A DNA stretch of 64,000 bases from Hyphochytrium catenoides. Its lineage: Eukaryota > Protista > Hyphochytriomycota. This document shows, piece after piece, positions 14,081-20,900 of the stretch. The notes below the pieces were generated by a model, which made no database searches, was not told the origin of the DNA, and saw only the letters and a list, made by a program, of their open reading frames with translations. Within the stretch, counting starts at the first letter, position 1. Each line of letters starts with the position of its first letter. The stretch is from assembly GCA_900088475.1 (NCBI GenBank), contig FLMG01002540.1:1-64000 (forward strand), in the 5' to 3' direction. The position numbers and the translations under genes were made by a program.

Positions 14081-17000
14081 CTAGTCATTTTTAGATGAGC
14101 TTGGCTGGTGGTGGTTCATTGCTGGGGAGGCTACTGCTGATGAAGCAGCTTCTTGCTGCTGTTTGACAGATGCGGATGGAGCTCCCCCATTGCCGCTCTC
14201 TGCCTTGAGGCTGCTGGACGTGCTTTCTGGCTTCTCGGCTGCTACTCTTGTCCGGGTGGAGCCGAGCGTTGGGCTAACTGAGGAGAGGCGGCCCGTAGCA
14301 GCTATGGAGGGGTGGTTCCTGCCTGTCATATCGATACTGGCTCTTGGCCCATTCATACCAGCTGTAGGAAGAGCAGACGACGGCTCCAGAGCTGAAGCTT
14401 TCTTAGTGGACGTCCGAGAGCCAGGGTTCTTATAGAGGTAAAAGAGCTTTGGTGTCATCACCAGCACCACACAGATGACAGACACCAAACAGCAAGAGAC
14501 ACTGAGTAGCACCACTTTAATGTCTGCAGCGGTGTCTATCCCTAGCGTCAGAAGTAATGTCAACCCACCCATCAAGGTAGCGTTGTACAAGCCAATAGCC
14601 AGTTGCTTAGCCTCAGAATAGTCCTCCACGATATGCCAGGACTTGACGGCTAAGTACACTCCCACGCCTAAGATAACGCCCTTGTATGCCAGCATCACGT
14701 AGAGACCATTGTTGTTACCATAGTCACAGACTTCCCTCGGGACGTCGCCTACTATGTCAATGGACTCTAGTGTCGTGGTGGATGACATCTTACTAGCAAA
14801 CTGCCACGAGAGAAGAATGATCAGGTCCACCAACAGGAACACTAAAGTCTCTCCCGCCACTCGGAGGTTTGAGACCACCATGCGCCTGATAGTCTTTTGA
14901 CCAAACAGCATGTATACGCGTTTGAGCTTCATCAATAACGGTGCGAAGAGGACAGAGAAGCTCAGACTGAGGGCCCAAGGGCGAAGGACGCAGTTCTGGT
15001 CATTGTTCTCTCCTAAGAGAGAGAGAGAGGATACCGCAAGCAATATGGCGCCAACTATAAAAAGAAGTGTAAAGTTGATCTGAGATGCCACCAGGGCTTT
15101 GGAGAAGCGATAGTAGTAGGTGAAGACCATAAACGGCAGAAGAAGGAGACAGGACAGGATGACCAGCGCGACAATCCCGATGCCCATGGACGAATCGACA
15201 GGGACATGCTCGCAGCCAAACTCAATATCATCCTGCAGAGAAAGACCTCCAAGACAGGCCCTGTCTTCTTCTTCTCCATTTTTCCACCTGAAGCTTGCAG
15301 TGACCACCTGTCGCCGGCATGTAGAGAGAGAGAAGACCATATCCTCTCGTGTACAGGGAGGCTGAGGAGACAAAATGGAAGTTTTACCAAGAGAGACGGA
15401 GTTCACTATGGGCTGGCTTAAAGCTACCCCGAGCTCTGGTGTCAGCATGGCTAGATGCTTGTACATTTCGCTCGTATAGATCCAGTCCATAAATCTGGCA
15501 ACCTTCTTTGCGATGACCGAAGCATCTGCGGTCCAGACCCTCTTTGCCATGACATTATATTCAATAGATAAAGGCCAGCACCCCATCTGCGTGACATGAC
15601 GAAATGCGCTGCCATACTTTGAAATCTTCTGCACTGCCTCCATCTCCAGGCTAGCGATACAGTTCCGCATAGTAGTGAGATCAGGATTGATCACCTTCTT
15701 CCCCGTTGCGCCCCGTTCACCCTCTTCGATTGCCATCAGCACCAGGGAAGTGTCTAACTGCTCACTCTCTCGGGTCCAAACGAAACCCATGGCACCTTGG
15801 ACAGTGGCCACGGTTCCTCGAACTCCAAACTCTGAAGTTAGTTCAAGCACGTTAGATCGGAACGTCCGCAGAATGTTGAGGTTGCTAGGGCCGAAGACTT
15901 TCGAGAAGTCTGCGCTGACGTTGCTTAGGTATCCGCTAACTAAGTAAGAAATCTCAGTTGCTCCCACGTCGATAGCAATGATGATAGGGGCCGATGGTAA
16001 GGTCTTGTCCGGATTGAGCTCTTGAATCTTGGGATCATTCCAAGTGCTAACGTTCCCTAGGCATATTTCAGCGAGGAGGTTGGGCGTGACGGTCACGTTA
16101 CGGATAGTGGATCCAAGATTCATTATCATCGACACCGTGCCCACGAAGAATGGGATAATAGCAACCTTCCCCTCTGCGACAAGGGTCTGGCTGGCATTGT
16201 CCATAGATAGAAATACTGCGCTAGGCATCAAGCCTACGCTAAGTTCGCTATCGAGGTCCGAGCCCACACTTGAGATCATGGTAACATCCTCCATCCAAGA
16301 TGGAAACGCATGCACAACGTGCGAGCTGTTAGCCCTAAAATTATCAGCCATCATCTCAACAGAGCTCTGCATGTATGGGGAATATCCGAGGTAGAGCTTC
16401 GAGCCCATGTCCGCCACAGTGCTTACTTGGACACAGCGCCTACCAGACCCCAGACAAGTGCAGACAGCCTTATCCACACCGATACAGTTAGGAACACAGC
16501 TCATCCTCTCAAGCATCAACTGGACAACCGCTCGCCGCGAGAAATCGCTGAGGACAGCATAACCAGCAGATCGTGCTACATCCGCGAACTGCGGATCAGT
16601 GAATGTCGACCGAAAGAACTCGACTACAGCACTCCGGTGCTGACAGCTATTGATATGAGTCTTCGTTCTCAGAAGAATATAGGTCATGGCGTTGATGGGC
16701 CAGCCAAGAGGAGAGTGAGTGTCGATTACGCTGGCGTTGAATCTGGAGTCGAATGTGCCTTCAGCAACCATCAAGGCGGCTGTAACTGAGTCCACTGAAG
16801 CCGTCACCAGAGCATTAGCACGATTGAAGAGCTGTACTGGAAGGAAGTCACGTTGCACGGCTTCTGAGTAGAACATATACGTGAGCGAGTACGGAATCAG
16901 GTTGAACTGCAAGGGGCCAAAACGAAGGGAGGGTTATTAGTGCAAGTAGAGGACGATGATGCTTGTAACAATATATATGGCAGCTCGCCGAAGGAGTAGC

Positions 17001-17925
17001 AGATACCAACTGCGAGTAGGTTCCAGGCAATTTAAGAGGGGCAGCATCACCAAAGAAGAGAAACATGAAGAGCATCAGATAGAATAAGGTTGAAACAAGA
17101 TGAAAGAGGGCTAACGGGCAGAGGCTATTGGGGCAAATTATGGGACCATTGCCTAAGTTCAGAAGGTAACATCTGGGCCACAACGAGATGAGGACTTACT
17201 GCGGCAGTGACGCCTGGTATCTCTTTGGCAGTGAAGTATGTTCGTGTGACATTCCCCTCTGCACAGCTTACTTTTTGATAGGGAAGCGTAGGGTCAGACG
17301 TCACATTAGTGGTCCCTTGGCACCATCTAGGGAAACTGGAGATTCCGATAGTTGACGCGAAGTCTGCACTGAAGGAACTGAGAGCGGTAGTGAAGATAGA
17401 GCTGACAGCTAGAGAGACGCTTGGTACAATGATATTTATGGGCTCTGGAGGCAACGAGATGGAAGGGTTCAATGCAGTGATGTTGGGATGATCCCATCTC
17501 GTGATCCTTCCCATGAAAATATCTGCAATGGCGTCTCTGGACAAAACCAAGTTATCGCCCTCGACCAACTCTGCGATATTTACGACGGGAACGACTGCTG
17601 TCACCACAAAGGGAACCATAAGAAGGTCCCTGTAGGCTTTAAAGTCTGACGGCGGAAGCATGACGTCCAGGGCTCCGTAATGGGTGGTAGCAAGGTCCAG
17701 GAGTTCATTTCTGGCCTTCATGGATGTCTTACTGTGGTGCTGGAGGATGATCCTAGGCAGCCCTCTTGCATCGGCCGCCGTGTTATAGATGCGATCCAAC
17801 CGAGGGAAGAGCGGTGCACTCATGGTGCCACCGGTACCAAGCAGTGTAAAAGCTTCATCTGCAACAACGTTGCGGATAAAGCACACCAGCGACGGCAGCA
17901 GTAGTCCCCATATGCAGCGCAGCAT
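14081..17925 (-). CDS. Class C (GABA-B-like, 7tm_3) GPCR with two tandem PstS-like type-2 periplasmic-binding domains; about 1183 aa, 2 exons (17925-17200, 16906-14081); alternative ATG at 17955
   Basis: Signal peptide MLRCIWGLLLPSLVCFIRNVVA. PstS-type motifs LVLSRDAIADIFMGRITRWDHPNITALNP, GWPINAMTYIL and a second copy LAEICLGNVSTWNDPKIQELNPDKTLP. Cys linker CTREDMVFSLSTC...CLGGLSL. 7TM with ASQINF, CVLRPW...LFAPLLMKLKRVYMLF, YKGVIL...YSEAKQL, PKL. One in-frame GT-AG intron at 16907-17199. Confidence 0.88.
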
Positions 17926-20900
17926 GACCCTGTCAGAAGCAATAACTTTTATCATTTCTCTTCTTTTCTGTGGCCTTCTCGCTGAGGAACGAAAGGAGCA
18001 GGACCGCCCTGCGTGGTACAGAGCTTTCTGGCAAATGGTGGAAGACTTCTTCGGAGCAAGATGATATTTTAGGGCAACGACATCGCATCTGGAATTATAC
18101 GGATGAAGACGTCTATCTGCACAGACTCTTCTCACCCCAAGCCGTTAGCTCGCCTTGAAGTTAGGAGTCGATTGTTCTCCACTCAGCAGAAAGGATGATG
18201 ACTGCCATACACAAACCAATAGTATTCTTGCAGTCCAGAAGCTATCAGATTTTTGCTAGACTAAGCTCCTCTTCCATTGTCCCTTTGCTCGGCCTTCCCC
18301 CATCACTCTCACTCGACTCTCTGAGATTCTTGGTCTTAGTTCCTAAGCATAAGTCCTTGGACATCCTCAGTCGTCCGCGGTTTTGCTCCGGAGAAACATG
18401 TACTGAACTGGTCTGAAAGAATGAAGGGTAGGCAGCCGATCTTATCCACTGCTGTCTATAAAACCATGACAAAATCGCACCACCACATTATTGGGGAGGA
18501 CGCAGAAGAAGATGGTCTTTGATGGGCAAAGCTGGACAAGAAGGCGCCATTTGGCATCGGTTATTCGCCATCTTCTCTCCCTCCTGCTTGTCTGTGACCA
18601 AACATCTTTGCTCCAAGTTGGAAGAAGAGATACTTGCCACTCCTTGATGAGAACAGAAGAGTGGCCTAAAAGTGAACAATAATACTGAGGTGATAAAGGC
18701 ACTAGTGATGGGAAGGTTTGCTGTATGATCTGTACCATGCCGTACATTTGCCTGGCTGTCCTCTCGTAGTTGGTTGTTACACAAGCACCTTCTACCCCTA
18801 GCATGACTCCAAGAGTCTCTTCTTCGCCTTGTAACGGACAGACAGTGGTGTCGGCTGCCGCAGCATTCCTCAAATAGGAGCAGACAACAAGCGCGAGGAT
18901 GACGGGAAGTGCACAGACGAGACTGTGAGCGCATATTTTGAGCAGCACTTCAATAATACTTTCTCCCAGTTGTCATCTCAGGGTCTGTGGCGCGCCGCCC
19001 TTCACAAGTTCCACCACGAGAGGACAGACCTCCGAGTTGCATGACATTGCGGACGGAAGTGTACTAGGTGAGGAAGGGGGCGATGGATGGGCTTAGCTTT
19101 GAGTAACCAATAATATGACAAAGATTTGATAGGACAGTTTCATTTTTCCTGCTCGTGATGAGCTGCACTGGATTGTATGATGATGAACAGACAGACTGCT
19201 ATCCTCTGAGGAGGACAAGACCTATTTATTGATTATGCAGTATCAGGACTGTGCATTGCTTTTCGTACCAGAGACACAGCAGAGCGCGACAACTCTGCAA
19301 CAGCACAACCTTGTTTTTGAGCAGGTAGGGTAGGCAACAAGGGACAAAAAAAGAGCAGGAAACCGCCGTGGACGGAGGTGCGACTTAGAAGAAGCCCGGA
19401 CGTGAACGAGTCTTTTCTTTCCGGCCCGACCACCAAGAATGGGACGAGGATAGGTAGGCGAGGCAAACCTTAACGACCAAGAAACAAGACTGCAGGGAGC
19501 ACACTTGGAGGAAAGGGAAGGAGGTGAGGGAAGGAGGTAGCCTAGGAGGAAAAGCCACAGCGGGCCGAAAAAAAGAGAGGCAGAGACGAACAGAAGAGAC
19601 AAGAGTAGTACAGTAGCAGATAGCACAATGACTACCCATCAGTAAGAGGGAAATTGAGGATGGAGGACGACGTCCCAGCTGTTAACAAAGACTGGAATGG
19701 AAAGCAATGAAGGCATCAATTCCCTCCTCTGTATACGCGGAAGGGGGTTCCTGGCTGCACATCAGTGAGTGCTTGGTAATGTCTTCCGTCGGAGTAATAA
19801 TACAGGAGGGTCGTATGTAACGGACGTCAAAGGCAGAGCTTCAGAGTGACAGAGGTATTGATGGCTGATAGTAATAGTGCCAAGGTGGTCGTGGATAAGT
19901 CAGATTGGTTTGGCAGTGAGGAGGGTCAGAAGGCAATGATAAACAAGAGAGAAAAAGAAAGGGGAAGGCAGAGGTCAGGATGCGGTAGCAATGACAAGAA
20001 TACTATGGATCACGACAGCGTAAGTGTAGAGCTTTCTGACAGTTGCTGTTAGCTAAGGTGCAGTCGTACGGGAGCCGCTAGTAGGGCAGTGAAGAGAAGG
20101 GTTGACAATGAAGAAGCATCAGAGCTGTCATTAGAATCCGAGAAAAAAAATTGTAGGAGGTGGAAGAAAGAATAAGAAAGAGAAATAGGTGAGAAGGAAG
20201 GTGAGAAGAGAAAAAGAAAGAGAGACACAGCAGCAGAGGCAAAAAGAGGAGTGTCAGAAGAATAGGGTGAGAGAACCAAGTCCGCCATTTCCCGAAAACT
20301 CACATACTTTTCATGGCACAGTGCGCCTTAGAGCCTGGTAAACATTTATATCATCACGTAAATTAAAGGTCAAGCCTCTTCCATACATTGGTGACAGTGA
20401 ACCTTTCTGTAGCAGTTGACAAGGCTTGGTTATGTACACCACGTTTCTCTTCAACTATCATCTTCTGCCCTTCCCTTTTTCAGCGCTTATCGATGTAACT
20501 TCCTGCTTGGGTCGCTTTCTTCATCACCCTCAGATCTTCGTTGCGCGCCTGACACCCACAGCACCAACAAGAACCAGCACTGGTTTTGTCAGGTCCACTA
20601 CAGGCGGTAAGGATAGTAGTATTCTCCCTCAACCGACGTCGTCATGAGAAGACATGAGGCACTTGCTTAGGTCGTTGTCCAACAGCGTCAATAAACATTT
20701 TACCTTACTATTACAAACACTAATCTTCTGATGGCAACAAACAAAGACTTCGAGCTTCTCAAAAAATCTAACTTCCTAGTAAGTTCTTTCCCCTATAACG
20801 TATCATCCTTCACGCGGAGCATTGTGAATCTTCCATTGCAATATGAGGAACGATGGGGCCGCGTAGTCAGGATGCAGTATAATATAAGGCCTATTTCTGT

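Follow-up and report, generated by a model that had tools for sequence, protein, structure and literature searches.

In a 64,000-nt stretch of the Hyphochytrium catenoides genome (contig FLMG01002540.1, positions 1 to 64,000, assembly GCA_900088475.1; here called the window), we analyzed a two-exon gene on the minus strand, 17925-14081, whose two long open reading frames (ORFs) lie 293 nt apart. The predicted product joins a signal peptide, two tandem domains related to the bacterial phosphate-binding protein PstS, a seven-transmembrane (7TM) domain like that of the GABA-B receptors, and a Ser-rich tail; a preliminary description of the DNA had proposed this layout, and both the profile matches and the translation agree with it. 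The gene is a class C G protein-coupled receptor (GPCR) with a non-canonical ectodomain of the type-2 periplasmic-binding fold. Its features are as follows.

17860-17925, minus strand: start codon (ATG at 17925) and a hydrophobic, signal-peptide-like N terminus, from translation and hydropathy; the paralogues likewise have signal-like N termini
17200-17925, minus strand: exon 1, 242 codons, encoding the signal peptide and the N-terminal ~55% of the membrane-distal PstS-like domain 1
16907-17199, minus strand: intron of 293 nt, GTAAGT...GCAG, phase 0, from the sequence
14081-16906, minus strand: exon 2, 941 codons plus the stop codon
16550-16906, minus strand: C-terminal part of PstS-like domain 1 (the start of exon 2), from TIGR00975 positions 188-299 and the E. 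coli PstS alignment
16433-16498, minus strand: inter-domain Cys knot with five cysteines, exon-2 amino acids (aa) 137-158, from the Cys positions; C..C......C.C......C in the paralogue consensus
15407-16399, minus strand: membrane-proximal PstS-like domain 2 with a degenerate ligand site, from TIGR00975 positions 64-287, PstS entries in the Protein Data Bank (PDB), AlphaFold, and Foldseek
15212-15355, minus strand: four-Cys beta-hairpin linker from domain 2 to the 7TM (Cys518, 530, 551, and 565; strands at model residues 359-400)
14429-15199, minus strand: class C 7TM (7tm_3), closest to GABA-B2, from Pfam 7tm_3, the PDB search, and the model helices
14081-14428, minus strand: cytoplasmic Ser/Thr-rich tail (Ser plus Thr, 28%) and stop codon

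The exons were searched one at a time, each separately. Exon 1 matched the Pfam family PBP_like_2 (E = 5.9e-7) and, over about positions 3-170 of the profile, the NCBIfam PstS model TIGR00975 (E = 2.2e-24), which also matched aa 1-502 of exon 2 in two stretches (E = 1.7e-31). On the genome, the TIGR00975 matches place profile positions 3-171 at 17838-17317, 188-299 at 16897-16550, and 64-287 at 16180-15467; by these profile coordinates, the gene encodes two tandem PstS-like domains, with the intron inside the first. Scores of 86.1 and 109.5 bits fall below the equivalog cutoff of 205, and the domains are homologous to PstS, not equivalogs of it. A PDB sequence search matched PstS to domain 1 at 3.3e-16 and to domain 2 at 2e-9, and the WNDP...LNP core motif of PstS is kept.

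Canonical class C GPCRs have an ectodomain of the type-1 Venus-flytrap kind (ANF_receptor), accompanied in most subfamilies by the Cys-rich domain NCD3G. Pfam searches of the window gene gave no match to NCD3G, ANF_receptor, or Peripla_BP at E<=1. The Cys-rich linker of the preliminary description does exist, and its pattern is kept among the paralogues, but it holds just four cysteines and is not an NCD3G match. It has no Pfam match of any kind, unlike the linker of a marine relative, P0050 (loci L018 and L019; TARA and another ENA metagenome), which matches Ephrin_rec_like (E = 1.3e-6).

That the two ORFs form one gene is indicated by the register of domain 1 across the intron. The TIGR00975 positions continue over it, from 171 to 188. 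Exon-2 aa 4-28 align with residues 187-211 of E. coli PstS, so that exon 2 begins at PstS position 184; the tail of exon 1, judged by eye, then fits positions 179-183. One short local alignment between this tail and E. coli PstS was discarded as spurious, and the register argument uses the exon-2 alignment and the spacing in C3424, an intronless paralogue in the same genome, in which a conserved Gly and the last residue of the PYS..Y motif are spaced by the same 15 residues. In five other paralogues the ORF is interrupted directly upstream of this motif; three paralogues are intronless. Profile continuity, the C3424 spacing, and the paralogue ORF breaks thus support a splice at 17199/16907, and the earlier suggestion that the intron at 16907-17199 is removed, leaving domain 1 in the same gene, held on these three lines of sequence evidence. 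Across both exons there are 1183 uninterrupted codons with clean splice sites. Translation could instead begin at a second ATG in frame, at 17955 (30 nt ahead of the one at 17925), which would add 10 residues to the n-region of the signal peptide. Bacterial contamination was considered and rejected on the grounds of the spliceosomal intron and the eukaryote-type 7TM.

In the membrane domain, Pfam 7tm_3 matched exon-2 aa 570-820 with an E value of 3.7e-34 (119 bits, against a gathering threshold of 33.5), covering positions 3-251 of a profile of 251. GABA-B2 was the best PDB sequence match (1.1e-17): a Lys of the window 7TM aligns with the Lys of GABA-B2 transmembrane helix 3 (TM3), a Glu falls in the column of the TM6 Asp, and a PKL sequence lies in TM7. 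We take the microswitches of this domain to be the TM3 Lys/TM6 acidic ionic lock, the Cys pair between TM3 and extracellular loop 2 (ECL2), and a PKxY-like motif in TM7, numbered as in GABA-B2. Across a family alignment of 72 sequences, both cysteines of the TM3-ECL2 pair and the Lys of TM3 (C475, C563, and K496 of the alignment) show conservation of at least 90%.

The same alignment was used to build an AlphaFold model of exon-2 residues 165-830, that is, domain 2, the linker, and the 7TM. The mean predicted local distance difference test (pLDDT) score of this model was 91.4, with domain 2 at about 90 and the helices, of which there are seven in the 7TM, above 90. A Foldseek comparison with the PDB returned first Xanthomonas PhoX/PstS, Burkholderia PstS, and E. 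coli PstS (best E = 2.8e-14; TM-score, by target, 0.71-0.77 overall and 0.75-0.77 for the top PhoX/PstS hits), followed by GABA-B, GPR156, mGlu, and CaSR for the 7TM, at a probability of 1.00. The type-2 (PstS) fold that the preliminary description had assigned to the ectodomain is therefore borne out, the modeled domain 2 being a PhoX/PstS fold by Foldseek. A full-length model of C3424 built from a nine-sequence alignment had a pLDDT of 53 and was not used.

We mapped the phosphate ligands of E. coli K-12 PstS, which we take to be Thr10, Phe11 NH, Ser38, Asp56, Arg135, Ser139, Gly140 NH, and Thr141, plus Asp137, by alignment onto family members. Domain 1 of the window gene retains the N-lobe residues Thr10, Ser38, and Asp56 and has P, V, L, A, and V at Arg135, Asp137, Ser139, Gly140, and Thr141; HMMER alignments to PDB chains gave identical substitutions. 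Domain 2 has D, G, T, E, and I at the same five positions, and its N-lobe could not be aligned. The distal domain of C3424 retains the full set (T, S, D, R, D, S, G, and T). Among 86 database proteins with at least two PstS-like domains before the 7TM, all seven side-chain ligands were present in the distal domain of 13, the Plasmodiophora protein P0046 included, and the membrane-proximal domain kept no more than three of the seven in 84. What these alignments add is that, across the family, the full ligand set appears to be kept sometimes, and in the membrane-distal domain only, and that it appears to be half destroyed in the window gene's subclade of six genes, the members of which, where the loop is aligned, share Pro at position 135.

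Since neither domain has the canonical phosphate residues, canonical phosphate binding by the window copy is unlikely, and this copy is probably not a canonical phosphate sensor. Judging by its site residues, C3424 is predicted to be the best candidate for a phosphate sensor in this genome. The earlier idea of a nutrient or anion sensor thus stays plausible for the family and is weakened for the window copy, from both domains of which the canonical residues are gone; a phosphate or anion sensor is a better fit to the family, and to C3424 especially, than to the gene in the window.

The genome assembly (61.0 Mb in 4759 contigs) gave 19 matches to 7tm_3 and 29 to PstS, co-located on at least 10 contigs; sites with both were C3424, C1638, C3832 (three clustered), C2229, C2629, C788, C2457, C4239, and the window, and at least 10 paralogues have the layout of two PBP_like_2 domains and a 7tm_3. 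In a tree of the 7TMs, C2229, C788, the C3832 cluster, and the window gene together make up a subclade of six copies (support 95/99). Within this cluster (C3832:1-23000, loci L003-L005), at least three subclade receptor genes lie inside about 20 kb, on both strands. The intronless paralogue on C3424 (6326-9889; locus L001:1326-4889, plus strand) has 1188 codons and the same architecture as the window gene. At C3421:28882-30587 (locus L016), PstS-like matches are scattered over small frames, one of them with an in-frame TAG.

Pfam analysis of full-length ORFs found class C receptors of two kinds in this genome, with either tandem PstS-like domains or tandem type-1 domains (Peripla_BP_6/ANF) ahead of the 7tm_3. 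Four are of the type-1 kind (C2740, C2594, C203, and C3894; loci L011-L014), and their 7TMs form a clade of their own (support 100/100). Tandem duplication of the binding domain has thus taken place in both receptor kinds, which share the plan of tandem binding domains followed by 7tm_3 and differ in fold. A search for the ABC-importer permease domain BPD_transp_1 gave no match in the genome and was positive in 14 of 14 control genomes; on this result, the PstS-like domains do not supply an importer. G-alpha genes occur in the same genome. The published H. catenoides genome paper makes no mention of GPCRs (PMC5795050).

A tree was built of 143 PstS-like domains, including a small bacterial sample of 16. 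Window domain 1 and domain 2 each group with their counterparts from the subclade (Shimodaira-Hasegawa-like approximate likelihood ratio test [SH-aLRT] values of 100 and 99). Most distal domains form one group (84), most proximal domains form another, which is unsupported, and the 16 bacterial domains form a third (87). This topology fits one old tandem duplication, with moderate support.

The rate of change differs between regions of the subclade copies. Identity is 71-76% in the 7TM, 54-63% in the four-Cys linker, 40-48% in the C-terminal part of domain 1 together with domain 2, and 31-36% in the tail, the least conserved region. Because synonymous sites are saturated among these copies and the ratio of nonsynonymous to synonymous substitution (dN/dS) is unusable, dN and identity are given per region; dN was 0.19-0.21 for the 7TM versus 0.44-0.61 for the ectodomains. 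A constrained signaling core joined to fast-evolving binding domains is the pattern of diversifying chemoreceptors and argues against a pseudogene.

The family extends well beyond this genome. Word-index searches were nearly blind to it: a protein search with exon 2 alone returned one metagenomic relative only, and a search with the paralogue alignment yielded nothing but PstS proteins of the bacterial type, about 350 aa long. We therefore used an exhaustive profile search, in which 16,527 proteins passed a cutoff of E<=1e-3 and 645 cluster representatives one of E<=1e-30. The best 150 matches were mostly proteins of 850-1600 aa, with a match that begins at the end of domain 1 and extends over the 7TM, and dozens were collinear with the profile in a single stretch over positions of about 9-890. 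All seven family matches checked with Pfam had two PBP_like_2 stretches and a 7tm_3. Named members are Plasmodiophora brassicae PBRA_005806, Mallomonas annulata, Chromosphaera perkinsii, and one TARA ocean scaffold; Plasmodiophora P0046, which combines a 7tm_3 with a distal PstS-like domain and a further PstS-like stretch, matched the family profile at 7.8e-92. Clusters automatically named "7tm_3 / PBP superfamily domain" in the ESM Atlas come from Chlorophyta and Discosea.

Parts of this distribution are in print. Krishnan et al. (2012) listed PBP_like_2 with 7tm_3 in Spizellomyces (SPPG_06488) and other type-2 fusions in Allomyces (PMC3251606), de Mendoza et al. (2014) described OpuAC with 7tm_3, also type-2, as conserved over distant eukaryotes (PMC3971589), and Rolfe et al. 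(2016) named Plasmodiophora proteins combining 7tm_3 with solute- or periplasmic-binding domains (SBP/PBP) "novel putative transporters" (PMC4815078). Literature searches turned up no functional test of any PstS-type GPCR within the library covered, and neither the eLife 2025 GPCR survey nor the IET 2014 paper contributed anything further. The PBP_like_2 and 7tm_3 architecture is thus already catalogued, and the window gene is an ordinary member of the family. An independent recruitment of a solute-binding protein, which the preliminary description had inferred, is not supported as a discovery of this locus, given at least 10 paralogues in the genome, hundreds of relatives elsewhere, and these earlier papers.

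Comparison with better-known proteins shows where the window gene is unusual. Spizellomyces SPPG_06488 and Plasmodiophora PBRA_005806 have the same domain architecture; the Plasmodiophora protein has its seven distal ligand side chains intact, whereas the window gene does not, and unlike both of these receptors the window gene belongs to a lineage-specific subclade of six copies. GABA-B (GB1/GB2) and GPR156/GPR158 have the closest solved 7TMs by sequence and fold. GABA-B and the window gene share the TM3 Lys/TM6 acidic pair, the PKL of TM7, and the lack of NCD3G, but GABA-B has one type-1 Venus flytrap per subunit and the window gene two tandem type-2 PstS-like domains per chain; the 4-Cys hairpin linker also sets it apart from GABA-B, GPR156, and GPR158. 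With bacterial PstS/PhoX of the PstSCAB importer the ectodomain shares its fold and a detectable homology. Unlike those proteins, it is tethered to a GPCR and tandemly duplicated, and it has lost the R-x-D-x-S-G-T loop; and whereas bacterial PstS works with an ABC importer, the BPD_transp_1 search found no PstC/PstA-type permease in this genome.

Taken together, we consider it likely that this is an intact two-exon class C GPCR gene with a tandem PstS-like ectodomain, one of a six-copy subclade in a eukaryote-wide family, and that its ligand is probably not canonically bound orthophosphate, since the C-lobe half of the site is replaced and the N-lobe half is kept. Several points weigh against this reading or its parts. 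The exon 1-exon 2 junction and the expression of the gene are read from DNA rather than RNA, and the loss of the domain 1 site is read from a sequence alignment alone; phosphate or another anion may be held in a shifted or alternative mode. The ligand, the G-protein coupling, and the dimerization of the receptor are proposals, and a relay between distal and proximal domains is suggested by conservation patterns. The distal/proximal split has only moderate SH-aLRT values (84-87), with the proximal group unsupported.

It is unlikely that the window gene encodes a true sensor of extracellular orthophosphate, in which one PstS-like domain binds phosphate and the 7TM signals to G proteins. Both domains are clearly homologous to PstS, domain 1 keeps Thr10, Ser38, and Asp56, and the full distal set in C3424 and at least 13 representatives suggests that the ancestral ligand of the family was probably orthophosphate. 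Set against this are the substitutions at the five C-lobe positions (P, V, L, A, and V in domain 1; D, G, T, E, and I in domain 2), which leave the anion-binding loop without any basic residue, and a Pro135 common to the subclade members in which the loop could be aligned. The loss of the canonical site from both domains would instead suit a ligand-blind partner subunit, comparable to GABA-B2 or T1R3, that couples G proteins on behalf of a ligand-binding paralogue; the closeness of the 7TM to that of GABA-B2 among solved structures, its strong conservation (71-76% among subclade copies), and the presence in the same genome of C3424, site-competent by its residues, speak for such a role. We regard it as equally improbable: a blind subunit in six copies would be unusual, and ectodomains that diverge quickly (40-48%) while keeping their fold and cysteines are more like those of diversifying chemoreceptors.

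Two further possibilities are far less probable still. For a novel solute transporter, composed of a binding protein and a membrane domain, we see hardly any room: the 7TM is of the standard class C kind, with its ionic lock, TM3-ECL2 cysteines, and PKL, we know of no transporter with a class C 7TM fold, and no BPD_transp_1 permease was found in the genome. What speaks for a transporter is the label applied to the Plasmodiophora homologues (PMC4815078), P0046 being in the same family. That the gene is a decaying or nonfunctional duplicate is very improbable as well; its ligand residues are lost and its relative on C3421 carries an in-frame TAG, but the 1183 codons are intact between clean splice sites, conservation extends to the cysteines and the 7TM microswitches, the model has a pLDDT of 91, and dN falls far short of the saturated dS in every region.

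Under the reading that we favor, that of an intact receptor with an altered site, the proposed mechanism has the membrane-distal domain closing on a small ligand, the site-degenerate proximal domain and the 4-Cys linker relaying this movement, and the 7TM in turn activating a heterotrimeric G protein; the window copy would have either a new specificity or the role of a non-binding partner subunit. More tentatively, and with some doubt, the tandem PstS ectodomain could be a built-in equivalent of the flytrap dimer, in which the distal domain senses and the proximal domain relays, and the subclade could comprise new chemoreceptors for ligands other than orthophosphate; these may be phosphorylated or other anionic organics. 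If true, this would show a phosphate sensor family diversifying into a chemosensory repertoire in an osmotrophic stramenopile.

External phosphate sensing in eukaryotic microbes is largely obscure, and a PstS-type receptor family is an obvious candidate for it. In this genome it is C3424, rather than the window gene, to which the site residues point for phosphate sensing, and a comparison of the rebuilt subclade site with that of C3424 could reveal how ligand specificity evolves on the PstS scaffold.

Among the relatives, the Chromosphaera perkinsii protein P0027 (2386 aa) and the P0044 cluster (about 2270 aa, from JGI metagenomes) have four PstS-like domains in a row. One four-domain set is annotated as PstS plus a Ser/Thr protein kinase, suggesting that the PstS module has been fused to further signaling outputs.

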